A stretch of 63,864 nt of DNA, counting the filler, from Ministeria vibrans ATCC 50519 (Eukaryota; Protista; Filasterea), in assembly GCA_943704425.1 (NCBI GenBank). It is 9 parts of 9 records of this genome, joined end to end, with 100 filler letters (N's around TTAATTAATTAA, not from the genome) between each part and the next. Parts side by side here need not be neighbours in the genome. Positions count along the whole stretch, not along the records: positions 55,209 to 58,432 come from CALSCP010001987.1; 8 more parts are not named here. One strand, written 5' to 3'. The position numbers were made by a program, and so were the translations under genes. The notes below the pieces were generated by a model. It worked only from the letters and a program-made list of their open reading frames with translations, was not told the DNA's origin and did not search any database. This document shows, piece after piece, positions 54,996 through 58,432 of the stretch (positions are counted from its first letter, which is position 1; each line of letters opens with the position of its first letter).

Positions 54996-55213
54996 GTCAG
55001 TTGTTGTCGTTGTTCTTTCTCGTTTTTCTTAGTTGTTGTTCACACTAATATCATCATCGCATTGTTGTTGTCGTTGTTCTTTCTCGTTTTTCTTAGTTGT
55101 TGTTCACGNNNNNNNNNNNNNNNNNNNNNNNNNNNNNNNNNNNNNNNNNNNNTTAATTAATTAANNNNNNNNNNNNNNNNNNNNNNNNNNNNNNNNNNNN
55201 NNNNNNNNTATGT

Positions 55214-58200
55214 TTAGGGACATGTCCCCCACTTGGGAAGATTTGAAGCCTTAAAGCCTTCGGCAAAATATTTTGGGCCGTATTTAATTCGAGGAACGCA
55301 CCATTCACTGAGACTAAGAAATGACGAGAAGAAAATGAGTAGAGAAGGTATCGACTTTTAGTGTCGAACTCTTGTTTGAAGGATGATGCTCCATCGAACA
55401 TGTAAGACATATCAGTGACACTCTACAGAATGGAGTAAGTGAGATGTGTGACGTATTCAGAGTGCCACTCACTGAAGTGTCAAACGTCAGTGGTTGATTG
55501 AAAAATGTTGCTCCACGGAACATGGAATACATAGAAGTGACACTCTACGGAATGGAGTAAGTGAGATGTGTGACGTATTCAGAGTGCCACTCACTGAAGT
55601 GTCAAATGTCAGTGGTTGATTGAAGGATGATGCTCCACGGAACATGTGAGACATAGAAGTGACACTCTACGGAATGGAGTAAGTGAGATGTGTGACGTTT
55701 TCAGAGTGCCACTCACTGAAGTGTCAAACGTCAGTGGTTGATTGAAGGATGATGCTCCATCGAACATGTGAGACATATCAGTGACACTCTACGGAATGGA
55801 GTAAGTGAGATGTGTGACGTATTCAGAGTGCCACTCACTGAAGTGTCAAACGTCAGTGGTTGATTGAAGGATGATGCTACACTGAACATCCAAGACATAT
55901 CAGTGACACTCTACGGAATGGAGTAAGTGAGATGTGTGACGTTTTCAGAGTGCCACTCACTGAAGTGTCAAACGTCAGTGGTTGATTGAAGGATGATGCT
56001 CCACTGAACATGCCAGACATAGAAGTTACACTCTACGGAATGGAGTAAGTGAGATGTGTGACGTATTCAGAGTGCCACTCACTGAAGTGTCAAACGTCAG
56101 TGATTGATTGAAGAATGATGCTCCACTGAACATGTGAGACATATCAGTGACACTCTACGGAATGGAGTAAGTGAGATGTGTGACGTTTTCAGAGTGCCAC
56201 TCACTGAAGTGTCAAACGTCAGTGGTTGATTGAAGGATGATGCTCCACGGAACATGTGAGACATAGAAGTGACACTCTACGGAATGGAGTAAGTGAGATG
56301 TGTGACGTATTCAGAGTGCCACTCACTGAAGTGTCAAATGTCAGTGGTTGATTGAAGGATGATGCTCCACTGAACATGGAAGACATAGAAGTGACACTCT
56401 ACGGAATGGAGTAAGTGAGATGTGTGACGTTTTCAGAGTGCCACTCACTGAAGTGTCAAACGTCAGTGGTTGATTGAAGGATGATGCTCCACTGAACATG
56501 GAAGACATAGAAGTGACACTCTACGGAATGGAGTAAGTGAGATGTGTGACGTTTTCAGAGTGCCACTCACTGAAGTGTCAAACGTCAGTGGTTGATTGAA
56601 GGATGATGCTCCACTGAACATGGAAGACATAGAAGTGACACTCTACGGAATGGAGTAAGTGAGATGTGTGACGTATTCAGAGTGCCACTCACTGAAGTGT
56701 CAAACGTCAATGGTTGATTGAAGGATGATGCTCCACTGAACATCCAAGACATAGAAGTGACACTCTACGGAATGGAGTAAGTGAGATGTGTGACGTATTC
56801 AGAGTGCCACTCACTGAAGTGTCAAATGTCAGTGGTTGATTGAAGGATGATGCTCCACTGAACATGGAAGACATAGAAGTGACACTCTACGGAATGGAGT
56901 AAGTGAGATGTGTGACGTATTCAGAGTGCCACTCACTGAAGTGTCAAACGTTAGTGGTTGATTCAAGGATGATGCTCCATCGAACATGGAATACATATAA
57001 GTGACACTCTACGGAATGGAGTAAGTGAGATGTGTGACGTAGTCAGAGTGCCACTCACTGAAGTGTCAAACGTCAGTGGTTGATTGAAGGATGATGCTCC
57101 ATCGAACATGGAATACATATAGGTGACACGCTACGGAATGGAGTAAGTGAGATGTGTGACGTATTCAGAGTGCCACTCACTGAAGTGTCAAACGTCAGTG
57201 GTTGATTGAAGGATGATGCTACACTGAACATCCAAGACATATCAGTGACACTCTACGGAATGGAGTAAGTGAGATGTGTGACGTTTTCAGAGTGCCACTC
57301 ACTGAAGTGTCAAACGTCAGTGGTTGATTGAAGGATGATGCTCCACGGAACATGTGAGACATAGAAGTGACACTCTACGGAATGGAGTAAGTGAGATGTG
57401 TGACGTATTCAGAGTGCCACTCACTGAAGTGTCAAACGTCAGTGGTTGATTGAAGGATGATGCTCCATAGAACATGGAAGACATAGAAGTGACACTCTAC
57501 GGAATGGAGTAAGTGAGATGTGTGACGTTTTCAGAGTGCCACTCACTGAAGTGTCAAACGTCAGTGGTTGATTGAAGGATGATGCTCTACTGAACATGTG
57601 AGACATAGAAGTGACACTCTACGGAATGGAGTAAGTGAGATGTGTCACAAATTTAGAGTGCCACTCACTGAAGTGTCAAACGTCAGTGGTTGATTGAAGG
57701 ATGATGCTCCATCGAACATGGAATACATATAAATGACACTCTACGGAATGGAGTAAATGAGATGTGTGACGTATTCAGAGTGCCACTCACTGAAGTGTCA
57801 AGCGCCAGTGGTTGATCGAAGGATGATGCTCTACTGAACATGTGAGACATATCAGTGACAGTCTACGGAATGGAGTAAGTGAGATGTGTGACGTTTTCAG
57901 AGTGCCACTCACTGAAGTGTCAAACGTCAGTGGTTGATTGAAGGATGATGCTCCATCGAACATGGAATACATATAAGTGACACTCTACGGAATGGAGTAA
58001 GTGAGATGTGTGACGTATTCAGAGTGCCACTCACTGAAGTGTCAAATGTCAGTGGTTGATTGAAGGATGATGCTCCATCGAACATCCAAGACATAGAAGT
58101 GACACTCTACGGAATGGAGTAAGTGAGATGTGTGACGTATTCAGAGTGCCACTCACTGAAGTATCAAACGTCAGTGGTTGATTGAAGGATGATGCTCCAC

Positions 58201-58432
58201 GGAACATGCGAGACATAGAAGTGACACTCTACGGAATGGAGTAAGTGAGATGTGTGACGTATTCAGAGTGCCACTCACTGAAGTGTCAAGCGCCAGTGGT
58301 TGATTCAAGGATGATGCTCCACTGAACATGGAAGACATAGAAGTGACACTCTACGGAATGGAGTAAGTGAGATGTGTGACGTTTTCAAAGTGCCACTCAC
58401 TGAAGTGTCAAATGTCAGTGGTTGATTGAAGG
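55214..58432 (-). CDS. DUF285/BspA-type repeat protein encoded one repeat per exon (at least 26 repeat exons plus a C-terminal cap exon); 5'-truncated
   Basis: 72-nt exons read SVTxMxxMFxxASSFNQPLTFDTS, separated by 50-nt GTGAGT...GTAG introns. The last repeat exon splices over a 56-nt GTTCGA...TTAG intron (55314-55369) to give FKQDLSEWCVPRIKYGPKYFAEGFKASNLPKWGTCP*. No stops or indels in any exon. Confidence 0.88.
55370..58432. repeat. 122-bp tandem array (~25 units) made of exon plus intron
   Basis: Intron 3' ends (plus-strand CTAC) recur at 55423 + 122k, for k = 0-24, through 58351 with no length variation. Confidence 0.97.

Follow-up and report, generated by a model that had tools for sequence, protein, structure and literature searches.

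Does an apparent 122-bp satellite in a protist genome assembly conceal a protein-coding gene, and, if so, how did that gene come to be built from near-identical exons and introns? The question is raised by positions 55209 to 58432 (record CALSCP010001987.1) of a DNA stretch of 63,864 nucleotides (nt), filler included, which joins nine parts of the Ministeria vibrans ATCC 50519 assembly (GCA_943704425.1) and is termed the window here. We consider it likely that a genuine nuclear gene of a marine microalga, which is transcribed and spliced, has its 3′ part in this piece and that it encodes a long DUF285/PARCEL solenoid that arose by tandem exon-plus-intron amplification and was diversified at five codons. 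The protein is read as a BspA/TpLRR-like solenoid of at least 26 coils with a conserved WCV..WGTCP C-terminal cap, each coil being encoded by one 72-nt phase-0 exon that is followed by a 50-nt spliceosomal intron.

Exon-intron anatomy and family membership

The piece consists of a single tandem array (55372-58432; period, 122; 25.1 copies; 94% matches; 0% indels by Tandem Repeats Finder). Parsing of the minus strand resolved each 122-nt unit into a 50-nt segment and a 72-nt segment, the division into intron and exon that had been proposed in the original prediction, and 25 introns and 24 complete exons were obtained. The introns are each exactly 50 nt long, with starts spaced exactly 122 nt apart and GT..AG ends throughout; every one starts with GTGAGTGG and ends with TAG (25/25). 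The complete exons, each of 72 nt and phase 0-0, contain neither stops nor indels and have the translated consensus SVTSMSSMFSGASSFNQPLTFDTS. Intron copies are ~98% alike, and their guanine-plus-cytosine (GC) content (0.48) is higher than that of the exons (0.42), while a terminal intron of 56 nt has a GC content of 0.375.

The original prediction also held that the array splices into an intact C-terminal exon. The cap and a TAA stop codon were found, but the junction is formed by a 53-nt exon and a 56-nt phase-2 intron and not by a 50-nt intron. Frame 0 of the last repeat exon reads on into non-protein-like sequence, and LSEWCV..KWGTCP followed by TAA lies in another frame downstream. Use of a donor GA/GT inside the last repeat and an acceptor TCTTAG/T (the slash marks the splice site) removes 56 nt and creates the junction FKQ-D-LSEW, which is the canonical DUF285 FxQDLSxW; this prediction was made from sequence alone and was matched exactly by the run contigs described below. 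The terminal intron starts within the homologue of a normal exon tail (GTTCGACACT vs GTTTGACACT), and the donor of the terminal unit seems to have shifted 14 nt upstream, such that former coding sequence (FDT..) would now be intron.

The gene is not detected by mechanical listing of open reading frames (ORFs), as had been anticipated: the minus strand yielded only fragments of 47 to 61 amino acids (aa), which run from an internal ATG through an intron to an out-of-frame stop in the next exon, and the plus strand of the piece contained no ORF of more than 42 aa. The exact 55-aa unspliced ORF was present on no record and had no relatives in a word-indexed protein search, indicating that the array is not represented among these proteins as called ORFs. 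No known RNA family was detected by an Rfam scan of the piece. The sequences TGACACT at the exon end and AGTGTCA at the start of the following exon are reverse complements of each other (e.g., 56607-56728), which is the dyad symmetry of PARCEL repeats, and the intron is located one base off the centre of this dyad. Pairing is possible between the intron start, AGTGGCACTCT, and a segment made up of the 3′ splice site and the beginning of the following exon; the folding energy of one RNA unit (z, −1.7; 10 of 200 shuffles equally good) was not clearly beyond that of shuffled sequences.

Domain searches were performed exon by exon with six single exons. Each of these 24-aa sequences matched Pfam DUF285 (PF03382) with 19.3 to 23.3 bits (E, 5.5e-5 to 1e-3), just below the whole-protein cut-off of 25 bits, in agreement with the recognition of VTxMxxMFxxAxSFNQ as a DUF285/BspA-type repeat. 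Beyond DUF285, the only Pfam match for the six exons was a weak one to the APC repeat (E, 1.5), and the PARCEL-type NCBIfam models TIGR02167 and NF045896 matched the exons weakly (best E, 0.05). Among the repeats (24 complete and 2 partial), V2, M5, M8, F9, A12, Q17, L19, D22, T23, and S24 are invariant, and conserved hydrophobic positions are interleaved with variable hydrophilic ones, as in DUF285/PARCEL arrays.

The 32-aa last exon matched the ends of DUF285 genes in metagenome loci, with L071 as the best match (56% identity; E, 5e-9) and six further loci, including L035, L040, L034, L046, and L057. In a library of 1.8 billion proteins, the cap (family form, xSxWCV..PxWGTCP) matched 85 proteins (best E, 1.7e-17), often several times per protein, indicating that it is a module that closes each DUF285 repeat block and is not confined to the protein end. 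Many long DUF285 proteins among these matches (up to 2624 aa) contain the WCV..WGTCP cap 3 to 7 times. The sole name obtained on cluster look-up for the best cap-bearing proteins was 'surface protein'. The 3′ end of the gene thus carries a DUF285 cap, without a signalling domain (Roc-COR, NB-ARC, or kinase). Together with the splicing detected in run contigs, the single-exon and cap matches place the array pattern far beyond chance.

The fold was modelled on an intronless relative of the same 24-aa subtype (L006:2137-2784) from an alignment of nine intronless repeat blocks. The AlphaFold model is a solenoid (predicted local distance difference test score [pLDDT], 86; predicted template modelling score [pTM], 0.83) with short strands at repeat positions 4, 14-15, and 19-21 and no helices; an amphipathic helix at repeat positions 3-12 had been considered and was dropped, as the model has no helix there. 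A wide structural search placed TpLRR 6mlx and the BspA-type leucine-rich repeat (LRR) structures 4h09, 4fs7, and 4fdw at the top (Z, 14.2-14.4, with 14.4 for 6mlx; root mean square deviation, 3.1-3.2 Å; 185-203 residues aligned), making the BspA label of the original prediction a reasonable one at the level of the fold. These are the best structural matches to the model of the relative, yet the sequence identity is only 10-15%, and the structures belong to another Pfam family, LRR_5. A Foldseek search of this model against PDB gave nothing below an E of 0.1, and comparison of the exon profile with the sequences of solved structures gave nothing meaningful.

Intron removal in run contigs

Contigs from runs were placed on positions 55209-55666, a region with three repeat exons and two 50-nt introns in addition to the 56-nt intron and the unique 3′ end. 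Four runs, all with short contigs, were compared: X3 and X17, which were classed as RNA by the guess of the tool, and X1 and X4, which were DNA-like. X3 and X17 come from different studies and bear different organism labels, and each contains a contig that skips exactly 55314-55369; the ends of the skipped segment are CT..AC on the plus strand and, hence, GT..AG on the minus strand. Both of these runs had zero cover on the 56-nt intron and on both 50-nt introns. Where the last repeat exon has its 5′ border, at 55422, the contigs of both runs pass into an exon end (the reverse complement of TTGAYACTTCA), and at 55595, the 3′ border of exon 23, they run into an exon start (the reverse complement of AGTGTCACT).

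In contrast, X1 and X4 cover the introns. A 1144-nt contig of X1 is identical to the piece over 55209-55390, and a 110-nt contig of X4 spans the start of exon 24, intron 23, and the end of exon 23. The exon-intron layout is therefore present in independent DNA data and the intron-less form in RNA-like data. Parts of the array were present in runs labelled as algae, marine plankton, and marine metagenome. The maximum share of the sampled words of the array in any run was 0.37, even though X1 matches the unique 3′ end without a difference; these low shares could reflect strain differences in the array or the building of contigs in repeats.

Contigs of X1 and X4 (1840 nt in X4) also match the last repeat exon at 55372-55427 but continue on the 3′ side as an ordinary repeat, ..CCACTGAC, while on the 5′ side, at 55427, they have 5 nt of intron followed by at least 255 nt of unrelated sequence. 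Such contigs probably mark the first exon, preceded by a unique upstream region, of this array or of a sister array. The features of the piece are listed in Table 1.

Table 1. Minus-strand features of the array gene, from the 5′ side to the 3′ side, in window positions
Feature	Positions	Strand	Details
Partial repeat exon, 3′ part (..FNQPLTFDTS)	58401..58432	-	truncated at piece edge; gene 5′ end further out
24 tandem 122-nt units	55473..58400	-	one 24-aa DUF285 repeat per exon; unit k (k = 0..23): intron 58351-122k to 58400-122k, then phase-0 exon 58279-122k to 58350-122k
First 50-nt intron, example of 25	58351..58400	-	GTGAGTGG..CCGTAG
Exon 15, consensus-type	56571..56642	-	best single-exon DUF285 match (E, 5.5e-5; 23.3 bits)
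Intron 23	55545..55594	-	covered in X1 and X4; uncovered in X3 and X17
Intron 24, the last 50-nt intron	55423..55472	-	variant ..TTCTGTAG; uncovered in X3 and X17
Terminal repeat exon, 53 nt	55370..55422	-	SVTDMSYMFDGASSFKQ plus 2 nt of split codon
Terminal intron, 56 nt, phase 2	55314..55369	-	GTTCGA..TCTTAG; exactly skipped in X3 and X17 contigs
Last coding exon	55217..55313	-	1 nt of split codon plus 32-aa C-terminal cap LSEWCV..KWGTCP
Stop codon TAA	55214..55216	-	sequence parse
3′ untranslated region, first bases	55209..55213	-	run contigs extend past piece here

Variation within the array and among its relatives

Nucleotide diversity (π) is concentrated at codons 4, 6, 7, 10, and 11, where it reaches 0.27, whereas the remaining 57 exon sites have a value of 0.034 and the introns one of 0.022. 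Variable sites make up 10 of 15 positions in the five variable codons and 9 of 50 in the introns (Fisher P, 0.0007). The distinct variant codons at these positions comprise 12 nonsynonymous and no synonymous changes, as against 11 and 6 elsewhere (Fisher P, 0.03), and several of the 12 need two or three base changes. The residues found there are S, G, D, Y, R, H, W, and V. In the nonvariable codons, by contrast, nonsynonymous diversity (pN, 0.026) is below synonymous diversity (pS, 0.062). The same positions vary in the intronless relatives (consensus, xVTxMxxMFxxAxAFNQPLxFDTS) and in the array of locus L067 described below.

Units 9 (57253-57374) and 18 (56155-56276) are identical over 122 nt, as are units 10 (57131-57252) and 21 (55789-55910), and units 13 and 15-17 differ by 1-2 bases. 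As the identical units are nonadjacent, recent duplication or gene conversion within the array is indicated. No higher-order period was detected, with mean unit differences being flat across lags 1-12. Pairs of variable codons showed four-gamete violations, including five for codons 7 and 10, which are 9 nt apart; in combination with the identical nonadjacent units, these violations point to germline reshuffling. The overall pattern would fit a young or homogenised array that has undergone reshuffling, with diversifying selection acting on five residues in each coil.

A search with the exon alignment identified 159 related loci, 80 from metagenomes and 79 from a viral collection. Of these, 156 are intronless, and 1805 of 1814 neighbouring repeat pairs in the 159 loci are contiguous and in frame (9 are not). 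L002, L004, and L006 share the 24-aa FNQPLTFDTS subtype in uninterrupted ORFs (1086 aa in L002 and 1168 aa in L006), with DUF285 scores of up to 1053 bits among ORFs of this type. The neighbours of the intronless relatives (L002:7105-7941 and L006:5664-6413) encode a DUF285-RING-finger fusion and an MT-A70 methyltransferase, and the L002 and L006 contigs may be giant-virus or picoeukaryote DNA. IMG/VR contigs, too, contain the FNQPLTFDTS subtype, and DUF285 repeats were seen in giant-virus bins; these viral occurrences agree with the reported movement of DUF285 between algae and their viruses.

A second layout with one repeat per 72-nt phase-0 exon was found in L067 (1-3789), L033 (400-1300), and L069 (780-900), which derive from three marine metagenomes and have a GC content of 0.65-0.66 (0.44 here). 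Their exon motif, xAxAFNQPL[TS]F[DN]TSSVTxMxxMFx, is of the same subtype as the present repeats (AFNQPL[TS]FDTSSVTxMxxMF), the same codons vary, and the intron ends are conserved (acceptor, ..GGACTCGGCAG; donor, GTGCGCTC), the donor resembling the canonical Micromonas donor AG/GTGCGT (PMC3879977). Their predicted introns, however, are longer (85-144 nt), far more diverged, and located elsewhere in the repeat, between codons 10 and 11 in the numbering used for the array in the window, where they fall between codons 24 and 1. L067 contains ~18 units, with a π of 0.18 in exons and 0.29-0.35 in intron flanks, and two repeats of L033 are joined with no intron between them. The difference in intron position indicates that the one-repeat-per-72-nt-exon layout arose at least twice in this subtype, and two origins at different repeat positions argue that one repeat gained an intron and that the unit was then amplified.

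Origin, function, and significance of the array

By the route that we favour, a single repeat with an acquired intron would have been amplified as a 122-bp exon-plus-intron unit, and unequal crossing-over or gene conversion would then keep the units alike as the array grows, shrinks, and homogenises. Exchange of units would never break the frame because each unit holds a whole symmetric exon. Meanwhile, the five codons of each repeat would diverge through amino-acid-changing substitutions. Bacterial DUF285 proteins are surface lipoproteins (PMC2996958), and by analogy the product most probably serves in binding or adhesion, either as a secreted protein or exposed on the cell surface. The variable residues (Y/S/D/H/W/R and G) would form a stripe along the solenoid and be used for binding.

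Several known systems resemble parts of this gene. The DUF285/PARCEL proteins (Roske et al. 2010, PMC2996958) include Mycoplasma surface lipoproteins of the LppQ/LppC type and have homologues in Ostreococcus, Micromonas, Phaeodactylum, marine metagenomes, and giant viruses. They share with this gene the VTxMxxMFxxAxxFNQ motif, tandem arrays, dyad symmetry, and the WCV..WGTCP cap; they differ in that the canonical repeat has 25 residues, whereas the FNQPLTFDTS subtype here has 24 and each repeat is a separate exon. Introns or exons are mentioned 0 times in the PARCEL paper (PMC2996958), a literature search for DUF285 together with introns returned nothing relevant, and the layout was not found in the DUF285 papers searched.

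The comparison with brown-algal ROCO genes that had been drawn in the original prediction is apt, as each LRR there occupies its own exon (PMC3341825). In the Ectocarpus ROCO (LRR-Roc-COR) and NB-ARC-TPR genes, one repeat is likewise encoded per 72-nt (24-aa) phase-0 exon, shuffling is made possible by the equal length and phase of the exons, and positive selection acts at a few repeat positions (Zambounis et al. 2012, PMC3341825; PMC11378527). The ROCO genes differ from this gene in having classical LxxLxLxxN LRRs, in being described as encoding GTPase-coupled receptors (Roc-COR), and in their description as loci with repeat-like sequences scattered in introns instead of a perfect tandem array; the gene described here is a compact 122-bp satellite with 50-nt introns that are ~98% alike. 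The introner elements of Micromonas (PMC3879977) also place many introns of one sequence in one genome, but introners are dispersed copies at unrelated sites, while the copies in this piece all lie within one tandem unit, and duplication of the whole exon-plus-intron unit accounts for their sameness. A 24-mer of the intron was absent from JGI metagenome contigs and from IMG/VR. Lamprey variable lymphocyte receptors are encoded by an incomplete germline gene that is completed by the copying of flanking cassettes; nothing in the piece hints at such assembly, the array being one contiguous gene in which the splice sites are normal. The short introns and the GC content of 44% resemble those of the low-GC outlier regions known from Mamiellales (PMC3491373), but introns there are AT-rich relative to exons, and here intron GC (0.48) exceeds exon GC (0.42); a source in this group is an unproved lead.

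Could the array be an active generator of diversity, in which exon-skipping isoforms or frequent rearrangement, either somatic or between clones, supply a repertoire of recognition proteins? The symmetry of the exons (72 nt, phase 0-0), which would permit such a system, and the near identity of the introns are real, Y, S, W, H, R, and D are frequent among the variable residues, duplicate units lie at nonadjacent places, and the states at the variable codons are shuffled. The failure of any run to contain more than 0.37 of the sampled words, despite the perfect match of X1 to the unique end, could likewise mean that arrays differ between strains, and shuffling and alternative splicing accompany the 72-nt LRR exons of the brown-algal ROCO genes (PMC3341825, PMC11378527). 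However, no skipped-exon junction, isoform, or somatic variant was seen in the run contigs, which are too short to show them, low word shares are also explicable by the building of contigs in repeats, and the identical, strong splice sites favour constitutive splicing of all exons; we regard this explanation as rather improbable. It is also unlikely, in our estimate, that the array works as a cassette system in which its length or exon order differs between clones or strains and some exons are partly skipped, giving many versions of the solenoid per population or cell line (directed, for example, against viruses, bacteria, or mates), with the same design having arisen independently in a GC-rich algal lineage.

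A real gene for a structural or physical surface protein, such as a coat or an ice-binding or antifreeze-like solenoid with variable codons that are merely tolerant of change, would account for T20, D22, T23, S24, and S1, which are invariant or nearly so in every coil and would form a regular Thr/Ser-rich face. DUF285 transcripts of diatoms and other phytoplankton peak at high latitudes, and the solenoid has been likened to antifreeze proteins (PMC11992049). Such a role is nevertheless improbable: there was no ice-binding family among the matches, the folds closest to the model of the relative are ligand-binding LRR proteins, and multinucleotide, amino-acid-changing variants at five codons with no synonymous ones exceed simple tolerance. 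A decaying or nonfunctional repeat, either a transcribed satellite or a pseudogene whose coding appearance is a relic, could be invoked from the location of the 5′ end beyond the piece and from exon 24, which has unusual changes (ATFF) and was in none of the four runs. This is very improbable given 24 exons without a stop or indel, the intact GT..AG pairs of all 25 introns, spliced contigs in two runs, an intact cap and stop, and the conservation of the nonvariable codons. A noncoding satellite would lack coding constraint and spliced transcripts, and both were observed.

For the reading of the array as a transcribed DUF285 gene of a microalga, amplified by units and diversified at five codons, a number of points weigh on the other side. 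The labelling of X3 and X17 as RNA is the guess of a tool, and a complete splice joint was seen for the last intron only; removal of the 50-nt introns rests on exact loose ends of 9-11 letters and absent cover, not on long reads. The variable part of exon 24 (55497-55528; ..MYSMFRGATFF..) had cover in 0 of 4 runs though its flanks were covered, and it may be strain specific or an assembly error. Both Fisher tests (P, 0.03 and 0.0007) involve few, related sequences and no phylogenetic codon model. As the fold comes from an intronless relative, the exposure of the variable residues in this protein is presumed. The missing 5′ end, with the start codon and any signal peptide or anchor, lies outside the piece, and we know of no binding partner or location for eukaryotic DUF285 proteins.

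The DUF285/PARCEL family itself is already known, and a layout of this kind, with a 72-nt exon for each repeat, has a precedent in the Ectocarpus ROCO genes; what is new is its presence in the DUF285 family, its compactness as a perfect 122-bp satellite, and its reappearance in a second lineage, where the intron occupies another position. In marine phytoplankton, DUF285 ranks among the protein families of unknown function with the highest transcription (PMC11992049). Genes of this type can hide in an apparent 122-bp satellite, invisible to ORF-based callers and probably to many eukaryotic pipelines that mask repeats, and counts of the DUF285 family may consequently be too low. Multiplication of an intron at least 25-fold through tandem amplification of a repeat unit provides a clean, datable case of growth in intron number. 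The 72-nt symmetric-exon layout known from candidate LRR immune receptors of brown algae has emerged anew in a repeat family unrelated to theirs, apparently twice. Finally, five hypervariable codons set against an almost frozen remainder, introns included, offer a compact protist system for the study of diversifying selection, concerted evolution, and tolerance of exon skipping.

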